Assembly: GCA_033442325.1 (NCBI GenBank)
Contig: JAWQFM010000025.1
Location: 33,425 to 97,424 of the forward strand
From: Salpingoeca rosetta
Taxonomy: Eukaryota; Protista; Choanoflagellata
Length of the DNA: 64,000 nucleotides
Reading direction: 5' to 3'
The position numbers were made by a program, and so were the translations under genes. This document shows, piece by piece, positions 5,208 through 40,912 of this stretch (the stretch's first letter is position 1; every line of letters starts with the position of its first letter). Below the pieces are notes generated by a model. It did not search any database. It was given only the letters and a program-made list of their open reading frames with translations, and was not told where the DNA came from.

Positions 5208-5600
5208 GTGCGTCAGCGAGGACGACGAAGGGAAGGAAAGGAAGGAAGAGAAGGAACGTGGCACGCACAACCACCAATGTGTGTGTGTGTGTGCACGAAC
5301 CAATGACACATCCCCCACCTCACTCCACCTCACCTCATCTCACCTGCCTGTCAGCGATGACGACGACCATGATCACCATCACCATTCCCACCACCATCAC
5401 ACACACACCAGCTGCTCAGCAGAAGAAGAAGAATGAAGCAACGGCGAGTGGATTGGTTGGTTGGTTGGTTGGAAAGCAGAATCGGTTGTTTGCTCGTTTC
5501 TGCTTGCTGCTGCTGGTTTTTGGTGTGTGTGCGATTTTCCTCTTCTTCTTGCTTGCTTGCTGGCTCTGCGTTGATAAATTGCTTGCCTTTCACCGCTCTC

Positions 5601-5719
5601 GGCAACGCTCATACCAACGGGATCACGCCCGCTCTCGTCCGATCGCGGAAGCTAAGCCCGTTTGGGCCCGTTCAGTACTGCCGTGGGTGACCAGGCGGGA
5701 ATCACGGGTGATGTTGCTA
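5601..5719 (+). rRNA. 5S rRNA: 5S ribosomal RNA gene (solitary copy)
   Basis: GGCAACGCTCATACC...CTCGTCCGATCGCGGAAGCTAAGC...AGTACT...GGGTGACC...GGGAAT...GGGTGATGTTGCT follows the eukaryotic 5S consensus, including box A (AGCTAAGC). Stems are preserved (GGCAAC/GTTGCT, CCAACGGG/CCCGTTTGG). About 119 nt, followed by a T-run. Confidence 0.95.
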
Positions 5720-5725
5720 TCTTCC

Positions 5726-5733
5726 TTTTTTTT
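5726..5733 (+). terminator. RNA polymerase III oligo-T terminator of the 5S gene
   Basis: T8 run a few nt downstream of the 5S 3' end. Confidence 0.75.
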
Positions 5734-5952
5734 CTCTCTTCATATGGGGTGCTGTAGCTGCTGTGGCGCTTGCTGTCTCTCCTTCACTTCCCTCTTCTCT
5801 CTTGTCTTAGCTTGTTGCTTGGTTCGGTTTACTTCTTCTTCTTCTTCTTCTTTGCTTGCTGACTGAGTTGCTTCAACTTGGGGGTGACGAGGTGGTGGCG
5901 TGTGTTGGCTCATCTCCCTCTCTCTTGTTGCTTGACTGTAGCGTTGCTTTGC

Positions 5953-5990
<38 letters not shown>

Positions 5991-6400
5991 TTGCCTGACA
6001 TCGTGTCTTCTCAACGCGTTTACTTCCATGTACTGACGCAGAGGAATCACACACAGGTGGGCTGAACTAATGAACTAGTGACAGAGCTGATCTTGGTTAC
6101 GCTGTTAAGACATCTTCGTCCTCTCCTCATCCTCCTCATCCTCATCATCACACGCAAACACATCACATGGGGGCATTGTCCTTGGCCGTCTTTCGTCGGT
6201 GGGCGAGGGGTGTTGCACCATACAGACTCCTGCATCACATCGTGTGGCGTGTCATTGGGCGTGTCGGACGCCAGCCCTTCCACTTGCATCTTCCCCCTGC
6301 GAGCATTTGTGTGTGTGTGTGTGCCCATGAAGGTGTTGGTGGTGGCAGCGAGATGTTGTGAGGTGACCGTGCTGATTCGCACCCCTTCACACGATCCCCT

Positions 6401-32871: not shown

Positions 32872-33524
32872 TGACGATGATGATGCTGAAGATGCTGCTG
32901 CTATTGGAGGTGGTCGCGTCGTGTGCTCTAGCACAACACTCCTTCGTCATGCTCATCACACCTCTCACCTCACCTCACCTCACCTCACCTCACCTCCCCT
33001 CACCTCACCTTGTCTCCCTCACCTCACCTCACCTCACCTCACCTCACCTCACCTCACCTCACCTCACCTCACCTCACCTCACCTCACCTCACCTCACCTC
33101 ACCTCACCTCACCTTGTCTCCCTCTCCCCATAACACCCTGCAGACTTTGGTGCCTTCAGCTCCCCCTCCACTGCCGGCAACACGGACTTTGCCAACTTTG
33201 CATCCGCGTACGTGTCACTGTTGTCCTCGTCCCTCGTGCAATTCTCCTCCTCATGTGCCCTCACCCACACACCCCGGTTTCCACACATCCCCCCCCCCCT
33301 CTTCCTCATCCACACTTTAGGCCCACCGCCTCAGACGACTTTGGCGCATTCACAGCCCCGGCACCAGCAGCTCCTCAGCCCACCACCTCCAATGCACAGC
33401 AGCAGCAGTCGAGTGGTGGCGGTGATTTGCTCGGTGATCTGTTTGGCGCCTCCTCGTCGTCATCATCGTCCACCATGGCTCCAACACAGCAGCACCAGGT
33501 GCAATGCATCTGTTCGTGTGCGTG

Positions 33525-33608
<84 letters not shown>

Positions 33609-33991
33609 CAACGTGCACGCATCGTGTGTGTGCGCACGTGCGTTGTTTTGTTTTGGTTTGTTTTTTCCCCTGGTGCTCATTGGACCACTCGACCCCCTCA
33701 CGCATCCACCCATCCACCCTTCTACCAGACGGCTTCTCTGATGGACATGGGGTCGATGATGACACCAACCACCGCCACCGCCACCACCACCACTGCACCA
33801 TCAACAACTGCTACAACGACCGCGACTACCACCAGCAGCAAGTCCGCTGCATCCAAGCCGAACTTTGGTCGCCTGAAGATTGACCTCGACAACCTCTCCC
33901 TCGCTTCCAAGGAGGAGGTGTGTGTGTGTGTGTGTGTATGTGTGTGTGTGTGTGTGTGTACGTGTGTGTGTGTGTGGATGCGCTTTTGTGA

Positions 33992-34027
<36 letters not shown>

Positions 34028-34718
34028 ATGCGCTTTTGTGAATGTGCGTGCGCGCGCCTGCGTGCCCCTGTGCCTCTGTGCACCGTTGTCCGCACGCGTA
34101 CCTTCATTCATTCACCCCCAATGCCTCATCACGCCTCCCCTCCTCCCCCACTACAGCCCAAGAAGCCCGTCACGCCTCCCCTCCTCCCCCACTACAGCCC
34201 AAGAAGCCCGCCACCTCCGGCAGCGTCTTTGGCGAACCATCAAAGCCGCAGCAAGGTCAGCCGACAACACCTGCAACTTGCAACCACTTCGCTCGCACCA
34301 TGCAGAGACACACACTCTACAACACAACACCACTACACACCACTACACAACACAACACAACAAACACGACACTACACCACTACACACCACTACACAACAC
34401 TCCACTACACAACACTCCACATCTCATCAACCCCCGGCCCCCTATCCTCCTCCAGGCTCCCAGAGCATGCCACTGCAGCAGCAACCAGGCATGATGATGA
34501 TGGGCGGCGGCATGCAAGGAATGGCACCACAACAGCCACCACAGCCGCAACAGCCCATGATGTCTGGCATACTCAACACCGATGCACCCACAGCAGCGGC
34601 AACAGCCCATGATGGGCATGCCATATGGGCAACAGCCCGCCACAGCAACCCATGATGGGAATGCCCTATGGTCAGCAGCCGTCGCCACAGCACATGGGGC
34701 ATTGGTATGGGGCTACCC
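30428..34718 (+). CDS. CLINT1: ENTH-domain clathrin adaptor, epsinR/CLINT1-like; 3' end lies in a gap
   Basis: [47 protein letters not shown]...[19 protein letters not shown]...[11 protein letters not shown]...ERKKARK. DFxxF and DLL motifs, KIDLDNLSL, and a Met/Gln-rich tail. Confidence 0.9.
32964..33113 (+). repeat. (CTCAC)n microsatellite in an epsinR intron
   Basis: Direct inspection. Confidence 0.9.
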
Positions 34719-34818
34719 NNNNNNNNNNNNNNNNNNNNNNNNNNNNNNNNNNNNNNNNNNNNNNNNNNNNNNNNNNNNNNNNNNNNNNNNNNNNNNNNNN
34801 NNNNNNNNNNNNNNNNNN
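34719..34818. other. Assembly gap (N)
   Basis: Run of 100 N. Confidence 1.
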
Positions 34819-34905
34819 ATCATGTGTACATTCTACAAACAGTACAGCTAAGATTATACGGCTTGTACCCACCTGCTGTCCGAACTCTCAGTGGCGCCCA
34901 CAGGT

Positions 34906-34927
34906 ATGCTCGAACAACAACAACACC

Positions 34928-34974
<47 letters not shown>

Positions 34975-37221
34975 CCCTACCACCACCAACAACAACCCTA
35001 CCACCACCAACAACAACAACCCTACCACCAACAACAACAACCCTACCACCACCAGCAACAACCCTCCCAAGCACATGCGCAACAGCGACCGATGTTTGCG
35101 TCGCACGATCCCGCGGGTGCATCGCGTGCGTCCGTGCTGCATACAAGTTTGATGCTGCAGGATGGAGACATTGTTGCAGCAGCGCGCAACCCAAAGTACA
35201 AGCACGCGTTCAGCCACGACCAGCAGACGTCTGTCGTCAACAGCTCCAAGCGGCCGTCCGTGTTCCACTTTCTCTGGTCAGGCTGGGGTCTGTTCCTGCT
35301 CATTCTGGCGGAGCTGATCATGGTCAACGTGATCATCTGGCCCTGGTGGATCATCGACGAAGGCAAGGACGTGCGGGACCTCTTCTTCAAGGCGCTGCGC
35401 GCGCAGGACGCCTCGTTTTGGATCGGCTTTGCCTTCTGCACCATGGCCTGCACGTGCATGGGGATCATCGTGCTGTTCGCCTTTGCGCGGCGCCGCATCA
35501 GCGTGCCCAAGACGCCGGTGCAGATCCTGTCGGGCCTGCTTGGTGGCCTCCCGCGCGGCGCCATCATGGTCTCCTACACCACCCGCGACCCAGACATGTG
35601 CCACCCAGACATCCCACGCAAGGTCGCCCGCACGCTGCCGTGCCGCTGGCTGGACCAGGACTCCCTGCTCCCCGGCATCCCGCTGCGCATCGCGTGCCAG
35701 CAGGCGGCGGAGACGTGCGAGATGGGCATCATGTTCGTGTGCCAGGCGTACCTGCTGAGCCCCGTGTGCCGCGCCGAGTTTCGCGAGCTCATTGGCAACG
35801 ACATCCACGGCACTGGCGGCAAGAAGCGCAACATCATCTTCATCCTCCCAGACGTCGTGCCCCTGCTCGACAACGAAGAGTGGCAATGGGGCAATCGTGG
35901 CCTTGTTGATAACGGTGTTGGTCATGGTGTTGGTCATGGTGTTGGTCATGGTGTTGATGGCGCTATTGATGGTACCATTGATCATGGTGATGGCGGCGAC
36001 CGGGAGGTGAAGGAGATCCTGCAGTTTCTGCGTCGCATTCGCAAGTGCACACCGGAGCCCATCCGTGCCGAGCGCACGCACGAGCGCAGCAGTCTTCACT
36101 GCCGCCGCAACGGGCATGCCATGGCGCACAGCTTCCGCTTCTCCTCCACACAACCGGGCGAATCATCCACAGATGACGCAGAGGAACCTTACAACACGCC
36201 TACACACCCTGCCACCGCAGCAGCTACTGCTGCCGCCACACCATCATCAACAACAACAACAACAACAACAGCAACAACAATAACACCACCACCACCAAGA
36301 ACAACACAGTCCACTGGTTCAGCTGCTACATCAGCACACCGCAGCACAGCCGCAACATCACCAACCTCCACCACCGCCACCACCACGACGCAGACGGTGA
36401 TTGCGCTGACGCCGCGCGACCGGGAGCTGATGAAACACGACCCGGCGTGGGCGGTGCTGCAGGCGTTCCAGCAGGCCGGCACGCTCACGTGGCTCGGGCA
36501 GCGGCACACCCCGTACTTCTTTGCAGAGTGGCGAGCAACGGCCTCCATGCTGTTGAGCGAGCCCAACGGCTGGACGGCATGGGGCGTCATGGCGCTCATT
36601 GCATGGCTCGTGCCCATCATCTGCGGTGTTGCAGGCGCATTTTACACGCACACGCAGGCGCGCATCGGCGTGGCCATCGTGTACCTGCTGGTGCTCGTCC
36701 CCGTGTGCGCGCTCCTGCTCATCATGTTCCGCGGGCTGGTGGGCGCCGTGCTGCCACGACCCGCACTCAAGGGCCCCGCGTCACTGCTCGTCGTGCTGTG
36801 GAAGCTCGGTATCATCAACCGCATCAACGTCGACACGGGCGGCATCCACCGCCGCTTTGTTGACGAGTTGGCACGGATTGGCGTTGTCAACCTCAACTTC
36901 AACCCAAAGCGCGACCACCACCTCCGCTTTGCTGACGCCGCCTCTGTCGTGCGCGGCGAGACGCACCTCCCCGATGATGAGCTGGAGAACGCGTTCCTCA
37001 TGCTGTGGCGTGATGCAACCTTCTCGGACTTTGCGCAGCTGCCCAAGAACCTGCAGTCCTCGTGGGTGCACCCGACAGCGGGCACGCTCGCCTACTCCAT
37101 CATGTGCTCCATGATGGTGTTGTTTGCGCTCGATCACCGCGCCCTGCACGGCACCATTGCAGGCGTGAACCTCTCCTCAAAGCCAACCACCAAGTCCCTC
37201 GGCGGCAACATCGACAAGTGA
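34906..37221 (+). CDS. Multi-pass membrane protein with an internal TIR (TIR_2-like) domain and polyQ N-terminus; true start may lie upstream or in the gap
   Basis: About 770-aa intronless ORF. Two hydrophobic helices, then IMVSY...RKVARTLPCRWLDQDSLLPG...IMFVCQAYLLSPVCRAEF...NIIFILP (35560-35850), which fits the TIR_2 pattern FISY/WxD/PG/YLxSxWCxxE. A Thr-rich linker and further hydrophobic helices follow. Confidence 0.75.
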
Positions 37222-37402: not shown

Positions 37403-37733
37403 TGGAGAAGCGTGACTGTTTCCGTGTTGACATTGAACATTGTTTTTGATTTTTTGTCTGCTGTGTTCACCTGCTTTGTGTCCGTTGTTATTGCTGCCTT
37501 CCGTGCGTTACTGCGTTACTTGCTGATCCATCAGCTTGCTTGCTTGCTTGTACACAGCACAGCACAAGAGGACAAGAAGTGACATGAACACGTGATGTGA
37601 AGCCATTACACACAGCACACACACACACACACACACACGCACACACACAATGAACACCACAACAGCAACAACACGTGTTTTGGCCGCCACACCCACGTAT
37701 TTTCCACTGAGCGTGGTGGTCCTTCCTGCAAAG

Positions 37734-38603
37734 ATGAAGCGCTGCTGCTGGCCGTCTGCTGTGCTCCCCACCTACTTGCTGGTGGTGCTGCTCCTCGCCC
37801 TTGCAGCATCGGGGGAAGTGATTCCGCGATGCGGAGACCGCCAGCTGTCGCAGGAAGAGGTTGAGGCGCAAAGTGGTATTGTCGAAGCAAGCGCTGCCAA
37901 GCGACAGGCCCTGATGCAGAGCACAAGCAAGCGCACAGTGCTGCACGCCTTTCAGCAACAACAGCGAGCACGCGCCGTGAACGACTACCTGGACACGTAC
38001 ACGCTACTGACGCTGGACATCCCCATCAACTACTACGTGGTGCACCATGAGGACGGCACGGGATATGTGGAGGAGGCGATGCTTGAGGCGCAGACGGCCG
38101 TGATGAACGACCGCTTTGCCAGCCCCATCGACACGGGCCTGCGGTTCCACACCAACGCCACCGTGTACATCAACGACACGTCGCTTGCCATGCTGTGTGG
38201 CCACCGCCGCCAGTTCATCGCCGCGCGCTACGTCATCTTGGATGGCCGTGATCCCGCCGAGTCCCTTAACGTGCTGGTGTGCCGCAGCCGACGGTTCCTT
38301 GGCGTCGCCGTGTTTCCCTGGGAGGCGCCGGAGGACGATGCCTTACAGTCCATCAACCTGCACCCGGGCTCTCTGCCCGGCGGGTATGTGGCCGACTTTA
38401 ACGAGGGTGATACGCTCGTACACGAGGCCGGGCACTACTTTGGGCTGTTCCACGTGTTTGAGGGCACGACGTGCTCGCGTCGGCGGGGCGATTTCATTCG
38501 CGACACCGCCGCGCAAAAGTACCCGACGTCCGGCTGCCCCTCCCCCGAGGAGAGCGCGGACACTTGCCCGCACCGCCGCGGCCATGACAACGTCAGTGGT
38601 TGT

Positions 38604-38650
<47 letters not shown>

Positions 38651-39546
38651 TGTGCATGCGTGTGCGTGTGTCTGTGCATGCGTGTGTGTGTGTGCGTGTG
38701 CGTGTGCATGCGTGTGTGTGTGTGTGCATGCGTGATGCATGTATGTGCGTTGACGGCCATGCAAAGCCCTTTGCATCACTCACATGCATCCTGACGCTGC
38801 ATTGCATCACAGATCCACAACTACATGTACGCTGACAAGGGATCGTGTACACTCGTTGTTTTGTGACGCAATGCTTGCCGCAAGCACTATCTGTCTGGTG
38901 CACACTGTTTGATTCATCGCCCCTTTCATCATGCGTCTGTCTCGCGTTTTCACCTCTGATCACATCACCCCTTCCTCACGTCCACTCTCTCCTTCGCCTT
39001 CCTGTCTCCTCTCCTTGACCCGCTTCTTCTTTGCGCTGCAGGGACTATTCGACAGATGCGTGCATCGATCGCTTTACGCGATGGCAGGTCGTGTACATGC
39101 GCTACTACACGGAATACTTTCGCCCGCGCCTCTCGAATGCGGCACTAGTCGTTGAGGCCAGCAGTGCCACGTGCACTGACCTCGGGTGGCAGCCCGCTGA
39201 CGGCGTCGTTGGCGCCAATGGCCGCGGCGTGTGCGCAGAGTCACGCGTCGGCAGCGGCGATCAGTGCTTGACGGGCGATTGGTTTGATGCCTTCTTCCAC
39301 TGCCAGAGCATCGGCGCGCGCATGTGCACATCGGACGAGCTGATGAGCATGGACAACAAGGGCGACATTGGGCGGTGCCGTGGCCTGCTGCGCAACCGCC
39401 TCGTGTGGACGACCAACTTCTGCAGCCGCGCCCGCCGCGCTGTTGTTCGTCTTCGTCGGCGGCGACCACCCAAGATGGAGTGCAGGCCCCCCGAACGCCA
39501 GGCCGGCACCATCCTCTGCTGCGCTGACGACACGGACACCAGATGA
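37734..39546 (+). CDS. Secreted zinc metalloprotease, M43 (pappalysin/ulilysin) family, with a C-terminal Cys-rich module
   Basis: Signal peptide; RCG cysteine-switch-like motif; EGDTLVHEAGHYFGLFHVF zinc motif; Met-turn IHNYMDYS..C...FT rebuilt from exons ending at 38591, 38813-38826 and 39042-39546; C-terminal CTDLGW...GARMCT..EL...CCAD module. Alternative ATG at 37650. Confidence 0.9.
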
Positions 39547-39554
39547 CACGAGCA

Positions 39555-39615
<61 letters not shown>

Positions 39616-39721
39616 GTGCGTGTGTGCGAGCATGTGTGTGTGTGTTCGTGCAGCCAGTCGTCGTCAGCAAAAAAAGAAAACAACGCCCACTTTTTGTTTG
39701 CACGCGACAACCACCACGACG

Positions 39722-40912
39722 ATGATGAAGGTGCAGGTGCTGCTTGTGCTTGCGCTGTGTGTGAGCTGGTGTGCCGGCCATGCTGTGATTGAGGAGGACG
39801 CGCTTGGCGCGCTGCACATCAACACAAGCTCTCCGTCGTCGCAGCCGGTGTATGTGAACGGGGTTGATGTGTCTGGCATGCAGAGCACCATCCGTGATCT
39901 CGAGGCAAGAACGCAGGCGCTGCAGCAACAGCTGTGCACACTCCACCCACCCGCGGCGGACGTCACAAGCATCACGGTGCCCACGGGGACAGCCAAGTGG
40001 GTTGGCGGCGTGTTGGCGCCCAACGGCCTCATCTACGGCATCCCTTACGCCATATACGTTGTCTTGATCATCAACCCGACGACGAACACGGTCGACACCA
40101 CGTCCATCACGGGCTTGCCCTTCACCGGCTGGTGGGAAGGCGTGCTGGCGCCCAACGGGCTCATCTACGGCATTCCACACCAGGCAAGCGGCGTCCTCAT
40201 CATCAACCCCAACGACAACACGGTAGACACAACCACGATCAGCGATGTCGGCCTGGGCGGCGGCGACAAGTGGGCAGGCGGCGTTCTCGCAGACAATGGC
40301 CGCATCTACTGCGCGCCGTACTCGGCTTCTTTCATGCTGATCATCGACACAGCCACCAACACGGCGGACACGACATCCATTCGCAACATCAACGCCATCA
40401 GCTACGCCTGGTACCAGGGCGTTGCAGCGCCAAACGGCCTCCTGTACTTCCTGCAGGTCCGCGCGCAAGGCATCCTCATCGTCGACCCCGCCACCAACAC
40501 GGTCGACACGTCCACGCTGGCAAACGTGCAGATCGGGCCGTCCCGCGGCGTGGTGCTCTCTCGGGCCACTGGGCTCATCTACGGTGTGCCAGACACGTCC
40601 TCGCGCGTGGTCGTCCTCGATCCAACCACGAACAGCGTGGACGGCAACGCGGTGCAGGGCCTCCCCACCGACAACAGCTATTGGCTTGGCGGCGCGGTGG
40701 CGGCCAGCGGAAAGCTGGTGTTCATCCCCGCCGCTAGCTCGTCTGTCTTGTTCCTCGACCCGCTCACCAACGCCACAGACATGACCAGCATCAGGGGTCT
40801 CGGCACGGGCAACTACAAGTGGTGGGGTGGCGTCGCGGCGCCCAATGGTCGCATTTACGCCATCCCATATCATGCAAACAACGTGCTCATCATCGACGCA
40901 GGCGCCTGCTGA
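39722..40912 (+). CDS. Secreted beta-propeller repeat protein (signal peptide, short coiled coil, ~7 repeats of ~44 aa), intronless
   Basis: MMKVQVLLVLALCVSWCAG signal; repeats W.GGVLAPNGLIYGIP....VLIIDP.TNT.DTT.I. Confidence 0.88.
   Translation: MMKVQVLLVLALCVSWCAGHAVIEEDALGALHINTSSPSSQPVYVNGVDVSGMQSTIRDLEARTQALQQQLCTLHPPAADVTSITVPTGTAKWVGGVLAPNGLIYGIPYAIYVVLIINPTTNTVDTTSITGLPFTGWWEGVLAPNGLIYGIPHQASGVLIINPNDNTVDTTTISDVGLGGGDKWAGGVLADNGRIYCAPYSASFMLIIDTATNTADTTSIRNINAISYAWYQGVAAPNGLLYFLQVRAQGILIVDPATNTVDTSTLANVQIGPSRGVVLSRATGLIYGVPDTSSRVVVLDPTTNSVDGNAVQGLPTDNSYWLGGAVAASGKLVFIPAASSSVLFLDPLTNATDMTSIRGLGTGNYKWWGGVAAPNGRIYAIPYHANNVLIIDAGAC

Follow-up and report, generated by a model that had tools for sequence, protein, structure and literature searches.

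The gene and the layout of its product

TIR domains are common to the innate immunity of bacteria, plants and animals. In a 64,000-nucleotide stretch of the genome of the choanoflagellate Salpingoeca rosetta (assembly GCA_033442325.1, contig JAWQFM010000025.1, positions 33,425 to 97,424 of the forward strand), which will be referred to as the window, we analysed a gene at window positions 34906-37221 (+). Its product is a predicted four-pass membrane protein carrying, between two helical hairpins, a TIR domain with a glutamate at the catalytic position, and its membership in a small, conserved and undescribed protist family with this hairpin-TIR-hairpin layout is strongly supported. Judged from its residues, it is plausible, at about even odds, that the domain is enzymatic and cleaves nicotinamide adenine dinucleotide (NAD+).

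The coding sequence is complete. According to the list of open reading frames (ORFs), the open frame starts at 34891 and comprises, from the ATG at 34906, 771 codons without an internal stop, followed by the stop codon at 37219-37221; a TAA lies in frame ~57 nt 5′ of the ATG. Stranded RNA-seq reads from three S. rosetta runs were located on 35053-37041, covering both halves of the gene as well as the insert in the TIR domain described below. The first mate was almost always on the minus strand, which corresponds to plus-strand RNA in most stranded libraries, and the depth, determined on a quarter of each run, was ~1-5x. At this low depth no splice joints were seen across the gene in the three runs, and the low-complexity stretches, including the Thr-rich insert, carried reads at a depth like that of their flanks. 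Contigs from a small run (RNA or DNA) were collinear with the genome and broke only at repeats. Two homologues encoded on short transcript-like contigs, P0001 (588 amino acids, aa) and P0002 (575 aa), aligned over their full length with ~35-41% identity; they are devoid of the polyglutamine, GVGH and Thr-rich stretches and otherwise collinear with the window protein. Introns hidden in the GVGH and Thr-rich stretches, which are missing from these homologues, are disfavoured by the flank-like RNA coverage and the lack of joints. We conclude that this is a real, weakly transcribed and apparently single-exon gene; given the low RNA depth, a minor spliced form may occur.

An assembly gap of 100 N (34719-34818) is located 88 nt 5′ of the start codon and leaves the reference sequence of the promoter and the 5′ untranslated region incomplete. 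Together with the low RNA depth, and with the finding that the exact ORF product was not present in a collection of 15 billion proteins in which annotated S. rosetta paralogues do occur, the gap might be taken to indicate that the stretch is not one functional gene but an ORF that arose by chance in GC-rich DNA, a pseudogene or a fusion of two genes produced by mis-assembly. This explanation is largely refuted and appears hardly tenable, as collinear full-length homologues were found in independent transcript assemblies and in other choanoflagellates, the 771 codons are uninterrupted, correct-strand reads fell on both halves and on the insert, and an AlphaFold model was confident in all folded parts.

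This model covers aa 100-771 and was built from 27 sequences (predicted local distance difference test, pLDDT, 76.7; predicted template-modelling score, pTM, 0.76). Membrane helices were called by Kyte-Doolittle hydropathy together with the model helices. The resulting features are as follows; positions in the model are given in model numbering.

34906-35085, +: polyglutamine and His-Pro-rich low-complexity N-terminus (aa 1-60), from the translation; S. rosetta-specific, missing from P0001 and P0002
35281-35352, +: predicted membrane helix 1 (aa 126-149), by hydropathy; model helix 27-50, pLDDT ~90
35410-35487, +: predicted membrane helix 2 (aa 169-194), by hydropathy; model helix 70-95; followed by RRRxxxxK
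35488-35550, +: basic juxtamembrane segment and short helix (aa 195-215) with the family motif PK...L..L..G.P.G, from the consensus of a 43-sequence alignment; model helix 105-113
35551-36060, +: first part of the TIR domain, betaA to alphaD (aa 216-385), from Pfam TIR_2, PDB profile matches, the AlphaFold model and VIA-align
within this first part, +: GVGH-repeat loop (aa 336-357) between betaD and alphaD, disordered in the AlphaFold model
35776-35778, +: codon of E291, the TIR catalytic Glu position, aligned to Roq1 E86 and the Glu of L6
36061-36381, +: Thr/Ala/Ser/Pro-rich insert (aa 386-492; 28 T, 18 A and 15 S among 107 residues) in the alphaD-betaE loop, predicted to be disordered (pLDDT 31-37); S. 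rosetta-specific
36382-36504, +: second part of the TIR domain, betaE and alphaE (aa 493-533); model strand 397-401, helices 404-434
36505-36570, +: pre-membrane helix with the motif TP..F..WRATA (aa 534-555), from a 27-sequence alignment in which P536 and W542 are almost invariant; model helix 444-450
36571-36630, +: predicted membrane helix 3 (aa 556-575), by hydropathy; model helix 457-476
36652-36732, +: predicted membrane helix 4 (aa 583-609), by hydropathy; model helix 484-510
36739-37155, +: C-terminal alpha/beta domain (aa 612-750), pLDDT 84 when modelled alone; kept in the core family

The four membrane helices are predicted to pair into two hairpins, each with a short loop between its helices. 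The original prediction, made from the DNA sequence, had described the polyglutamine stretch and the first two helices, which are present, as well as more membrane helices behind the TIR block. Helices 3 and 4 stood, whereas the hydrophobic residues 724-745, considered as a fifth membrane helix, were modelled as a long core helix buried in the C-terminal domain and were rejected. The predicted extracytosolic loops comprise ~19 and ~7 residues, and there is therefore no ectodomain. Besides TIR_2, no other Pfam domain was found in the window protein, LRR (leucine-rich repeat), ARM and SAM included, nor was a signal peptide; the earlier statement that an LRR or Ig ectodomain is lacking is thus confirmed. 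The segment behind helix 2 contains four Lys/Arg and no Asp/Glu residues, which by the positive-inside rule places the N-terminus, the TIR domain and the C-terminus in the cytosol. This predicted orientation, with almost nothing on the other face of the membrane, is strongly supported.

TIR fold, active-site residues and C-terminal domain

Pfam TIR_2 (PF13676) matched aa 220-321 of the window protein (E = 1.6e-5) with 25.8 bits compared to a curated cut-off of 28 bits, and the same stretch scored 29.7 bits in a six-frame scan of the 55.4-Mb genome. P0001 and P0002 matched TIR_2 independently (20.2 and 24.1 bits), and two S. rosetta paralogues reached 36.6 and 37.6 bits. When a profile of 43 family TIRs was compared with the PDB, each of the 59 sequences matched was a TIR or related SEFIR domain, the best E-values being obtained for PdTIR (4.6e-8), Cat1 (6.2e-8), Roq1 (1.4e-7) and L6 (2.9e-6). 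With a family-profile E-value of 4.6e-8 against PDB TIRs, we regard TIR homology as settled.

In the predicted structure, strands at aa 220-223, 246-247, 273-278, 308-313 and 496-500, with helices between them, follow the five-strand, flavodoxin-like order of TIR domains. VIA-align superimposed model residues 116-431 on whole TIR domains with Z 10-12.2 and a root-mean-square deviation (rmsd) of 2.6-3.8, among them RPPT-TIR (154 residues aligned), AbTir (130 of 134 at rmsd 2.6), SARM1 residues 561-700, RUN1, RPP1, TLR6 and MyD88; the TIR-related nucleoside hydrolase DNPH1 was also matched. The top Foldseek matches were TIR domains as well (probability 1.0), although the length of the query and the interruption of the domain kept the E-values weak. 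Since the structural match crosses the Thr-rich stretch, the TIR domain comprises ~aa 216-533 (35551-36504) and the Thr-rich residues form an internal insertion. The original prediction had proposed a TIR block at 35560-35850 followed by a Thr-rich linker. Profile and predicted fold bear out its identity as a TIR, but the domain extends further than proposed, and the supposed linker lies inside it. A complete TIR domain between membrane helices 2 and 3 is thus firmly supported by the model.

Three motifs had been named for this block, and all were found in place: IMVSY at aa 220-224 (35563), WLDQDSLLPG at aa 248-257 and SPVCRAE, which includes E291. The profile alignments place E291 opposite the Glu of the W-C-x-x-E-L motif, that is, opposite E86 of Roq1 (counted on the alignment) and E135 of L6 (WCLMEL); ROQ1 E86A and L6 E135A are catalytic-site mutants in the literature. 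E291 was invariant in 43 of 43 relatives, as were the betaA Ser S223, Y224, D250, G257, Y282, S285 and C288, at a mean column identity of 19%. G257, part of an L-P-G motif, was aligned with the BB-loop Gly of Roq1 (K-R-G), a residue required in AbTir, where G174A is inactive (Manik et al.). The original prediction had made itself dependent on a match to the TIR fold and on a Glu aligned with the catalytic position, and both were found.

A further position of alphaC differs. Four residues before the Glu, where AbTir has W204, L6 W131 and Roq1 W82, the window protein carries V287. Among the 43 relatives the position is occupied by N in 24, I in six, A in six, V in three and other residues in four, P, M and S being listed with one each; no aromatic residue occurred. 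Manik et al. observed an aromatic at the position of AbTir W204 in every cyclase TIR surveyed and less conservation in TIRs producing only ADP-ribose (ADPR). This hallmark of cyclase-type TIRs is absent here. They further reported that AbTir W204A cyclises less and that L6 W131A and ROQ1 W82A lose NAD+-cleaving (NADase) activity entirely. For the flax M protein, W146A did not abolish cell death. As the aromatic is missing family-wide, the residues favour linear ADPR, formed by plain NAD+ hydrolysis, over a cyclic ADPR (cADPR) isomer as the expected product if the domain is active.

The same features might also be read without catalysis. TLR1 and TLR6 keep the same Glu in the alignment, and MyD88, TLR6, IL-18Rbeta and MAL fitted the model about as well as enzymatic TIRs did (Z 9.9-11.7). 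Together with the loss of the alphaC aromatic needed in L6 and ROQ1, and with at least 38 TIR_2 loci in the genome as possible partners, this would suit an adaptor residing in the membrane and seeding TIR-TIR assemblies with some of the soluble S. rosetta TIRs, similar to Toll-like receptors (TLRs) and MyD88 but without an ectodomain. Such a non-catalytic scaffold is possible, if on the unlikely side: at so low a column identity, the invariance of E291, G257 and S223 would be difficult to account for unless the domain had a pocket for catalysis or ligand binding, the best sequence matches were enzymatic TIRs of bacteria and plants, and even TLR TIRs, TLR4 included, make cADPR according to a 2026 preprint. 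The Glu had been put forward as a mark separating enzymatic from TLR-like TIRs; as TLR1 and TLR6 keep it and TLR TIRs are reported to make cADPR, it does not serve this purpose.

Alternatively, the domain might act on another substrate, as a 2′,3′-cNMP (cyclic nucleotide monophosphate) synthetase, in NAD-RNA decapping or in base exchange, or the four-helix bundle might act as a pore or membrane disruptor with the TIR domain serving for oligomerisation. Alternative TIR activities are documented in the literature, the family motif S-x-N-C-x-x-E, in which Trp is replaced by N or an aliphatic residue, points to a changed pocket, and the membrane helices and the TP..F..W motif are kept family-wide. 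We nevertheless consider these activities unlikely, since conserved polar residues, as expected for a pore, are few (one Glu and one Asn in helix 1, none in helices 2-3) and models of bacterial membrane effectors and defence proteins were not matched.

The C-terminal domain is predicted to be flavodoxin-like and matched no known family. Its fold neighbours at Z 5-6.4 were receiver domains, the B12-binding domain of methylmalonyl-CoA mutase, MTH538 and TIRAP; Foldseek E-values were 0.016 or higher, with PdTIR at probability 0.9 and E = 0.03. Atlas matches had template-modelling (TM) scores of 0.41-0.53, and four of the ten rows were bacterial TIR families (0.46-0.53). Neither Pfam nor PDB sequences gave a match to this domain, an hhalign comparison with the TIR profile of the same family was negative (probability 0.4%), and the language-model neighbours (0.79) were at noise level. 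A second, degenerate TIR domain was rejected on these grounds, as the fold matches are generic and a sequence signal is lacking; it is retained as a lead only. In one relative, P0032 (270 aa), the C-terminal profile matched twice in consecutive, partly overlapping pieces (positions 1-101 and 52-149), which could reflect a duplication or a large insertion in the domain.

The protein family and known TIR systems

Relatives were first recovered by a word-indexed protein search limited to aa 110-345; searches with the whole protein or a 27-sequence profile yielded nothing new, most likely because low-complexity words filled the candidate lists. An exhaustive profile search of 1.84 billion protein representatives then gave 68 relatives at E ≤1e-3, 49 of them at ≤1e-10, and S-x-x-C-x-x-E was present in nearly all 68. 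Hydrophobic helices flank the TIR domain on both sides in 33 of the 46 relatives of at least 350 aa and on one side in the other 13, with none lacking them altogether, and in about half the TIR profile begins no more than a few residues from the upstream helix. Wide conservation also extends over betaE, helices 3-4 and the first part of the C-terminal domain, which argues for one conserved multi-part protein and excludes a chance fusion of domains. All elements of the family motif set, S-Y ... W-L-D ... P-G ... Y-x-x-S-x-x-C-x-x-E followed by the TP..F..W pre-membrane helix, were found in the window protein.

Source labels were looked up for 28 of the 68 relatives. They comprise the choanoflagellates Mylnosiga fluctuans, Salpingoeca macrocollata, S. 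urceolata, Diaphanoeca grandis, Hartaetosiga balthica and S. rosetta and, outside this group, Rhodelphis limneticus, the centrohelid Pterocystis, an MMETSP transcript and a Tara Oceans scaffold, which is eukaryotic as it carries ING and SGF29 as neighbours. At least seven choanoflagellates possess family members, and no animal, plant, fungal or bacterial label occurred among the 28 clusters looked up.

S. rosetta itself has four members (E ≤5e-30; the next S. rosetta TIR follows at 2e-11): the window gene (C25) and paralogues at C34:55479-55847 (L013), C5:1602257-1602562 (L012) and C33:227599-227955 (L014). PTSG_10286 (C34) and PTSG_13047 (C33) are encoded by exons of the respective genome loci with 99.5-100% identity, so that these two paralogues are multi-exon genes in contrast to the apparently intronless window copy; the near-complete identity of these annotated proteins also confirms the assignment of the genome to S. 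rosetta. The PTSG_10286 model begins at the TIR domain and may have missed upstream exons with membrane helices. In UniProt the paralogues are named only 'TIR domain-containing protein'.

Two environmental contigs deserve mention. On L021, the family member P0022 is located ~1.7 kb from a separate 354-aa TIR_2 protein (5316-6380, -), and the two may represent a TIR gene pair. On L020 (1-7817), a tandem array with a unit of ~1.77 kb in at least four copies lies directly 5′ of the family member P0093.

Among the closest known systems are the enzymatic TIRs of plant TNLs and TIR-only proteins and of bacteria (Roq1, L6, RPP1, RUN1, AbTir, PdTIR and Cat1), which have the same fold in the model (Z 10-12) and provided the best sequence-profile matches. 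Shared with them are the pattern F/W-x-D ... L-x-x-G ... A ... Y-x-x-S-x-x-C-x-x-E, the Glu at the catalytic position and the BB-loop Gly. Unlike in plant and bacterial enzymatic proteins, the window TIR is situated in an internal loop of a four-pass membrane protein, anchored at both ends, and carries an additional 107-residue disordered insert in the alphaD-betaE loop; NB-ARC/LRR, coiled-coil and CARF partner domains are not present, and the alphaC Trp of Roq1 W82, L6 W131 and AbTir W204 is replaced by V, or by N, I, A or V in the family.

With TLRs, including those of choanoflagellates and their 'Kinase TLRs', the protein shares the membrane location, a cytosolic TIR domain and the occurrence in choanoflagellates. 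It differs in lacking a signal peptide and an LRR ectodomain, in having four membrane helices instead of one and an internal instead of a C-terminal TIR domain, and in its additional C-terminal alpha/beta domain. A TLR is thus ruled out by architecture, and the proposal of a non-TLR, multi-pass membrane protein with an internal TIR and no LRR or Ig part is upheld. SARM1 is similar in that its whole TIR domain was matched (Z ~11), the catalytic Glu is kept and the window protein is likewise a candidate NAD+ consumer. In contrast to SARM1, it has no Trp four residues before the Glu and would be integral to the membrane, whereas SARM1 is peripheral and mitochondria-associated; the lack of ARM repeats and of the tandem SAM domains rules SARM1 out. 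PADLOC and NCBIfam defence models (Thoeris ThsB, Pycsar/CBASS TIR effectors, SPARTA) matched neither the window protein nor two relatives. One paralogue gave a marginal SAVED_TIR match (E = 0.0025). A bacterial-defence TIR protein is excluded by the architecture as well.

The choanoflagellate TIR survey of Richter et al. 2018 (PMC6040629) lists LRR-TM-TIR receptors, Kinase TLRs, Kinase TIRs, SARM1 and soluble Ank/Arm/SH2-TIR proteins, and the multi-pass form is not among these architectures. A literature search for the hairpin-TIR-hairpin layout, covering choanoflagellate and eukaryotic TIR surveys, found no description of it, in agreement with the original prediction, in which the architecture was not recognised as characterised. 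The preprint of Hurieva et al. 2026 (10.64898/2026.04.20.719644) reports that a membrane-spanning Arabidopsis TIR protein makes cADPR and that TIRs of S. rosetta and other protists are catalytically active. The Arabidopsis protein, like ours, is a eukaryotic, membrane-spanning, non-TLR TIR protein; its lineage is different. The S. rosetta TIR assayed, F2UB80 (1352 aa), is encoded by a gene other than the window gene, and the paralogues F2UQV6 and F2UPP0 do not occur among the listed rows of the supplements of the 2026 TIR preprint. The work of Hurieva et al. thus sets a precedent for catalytic protist TIRs and for membrane-bound TIRs but not for the present family.

Downstream of the window gene, the ORF at 37650-38735 (+) matched the zinc protease family Peptidase_M43 (pappalysin-type; E = 2.4e-7). 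It extends into a (GT)n microsatellite and probably represents a single exon of a gene that is spliced. The ORF at 39368-40912 (+) contains G-V-L-A-P-N-G-x-I-Y repeat units with matches to DUF5074 and DUF6923, and its product looks like a beta-propeller-type repeat protein; a long opposite-strand ORF overlapping it is probably spurious. Neither neighbour provides a functional hint for the TIR gene. Long (GT)n/(CA)n microsatellites at 33500-34100, 38600-38800 and 39480-39600 flank these genes and produce, on either strand, spurious ORFs of Cys-Val or His-Thr repeats.

Proposed function

We propose that the window protein is a four-pass, membrane-tethered TIR enzyme that cleaves NAD+ and acts in cell-autonomous stress or immune signalling. 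The hairpins would both anchor the protein and cluster it in the plane of the membrane. Like other TIR enzymes, copies clustered side by side could bring two TIR domains together so that these share a composite active site, and the clustered domains would then convert NAD+ to linear ADPR and nicotinamide, with the C-terminal flavodoxin-like domain acting as a regulatory or sensing module.

Several points weigh against this proposal. Since TLR1 and TLR6 keep the Glu, its presence alone is weak evidence for an enzyme. The family-wide loss of the alphaC aromatic, together with the activity lost in L6 W131A and ROQ1 W82A, means that the domain possibly has no NADase activity, and a TIR that is non-catalytic or has an altered substrate is a serious alternative. 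Furthermore, the TIR_2 score at the protein level is slightly under the curated cut-off, expression is low, the topology is based on hydropathy and on a model from only 27 sequences, and neither activation by clustering nor the role of the C-terminal domain is more than an inference. Taking all this into account, we assign the complete proposal, from membrane tether to signalling role, a probability of roughly 0.5.

A more far-reaching version connects the proposed enzyme to Ca2+ signalling. S. rosetta possesses an ADPR-gated TRPM2 channel-enzyme (PMC6461439, PMC11479946). A membrane-bound ADPR generator of pre-animal origin, clustered by damage, by infection or by a ligand of the C-terminal domain, might supply ADPR that opens TRPM2 and thereby causes Ca2+ signalling or cell death. 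The link to TRPM2 is speculation, and we regard this chain of events as very unlikely in its entirety.

If the TIR domain is active, the family would represent a membrane-delimited source of NAD+-derived signals and, as the alphaC aromatic is missing family-wide, a natural test of the contribution of this residue. If the ADPR formed does act on TRPM2, an axis from TIR via ADPR to Ca2+ would exist in the organisms most closely related to animals. S. rosetta is amenable to genetics, so that the gene can be knocked out and assayed. The occurrence of this layout, a TIR domain with the catalytic Glu in a multi-pass protein without an ectodomain, in seven or more choanoflagellates as well as in distantly related protists bears on how enzymatic and scaffolding roles of TIR domains were distributed before animals arose.

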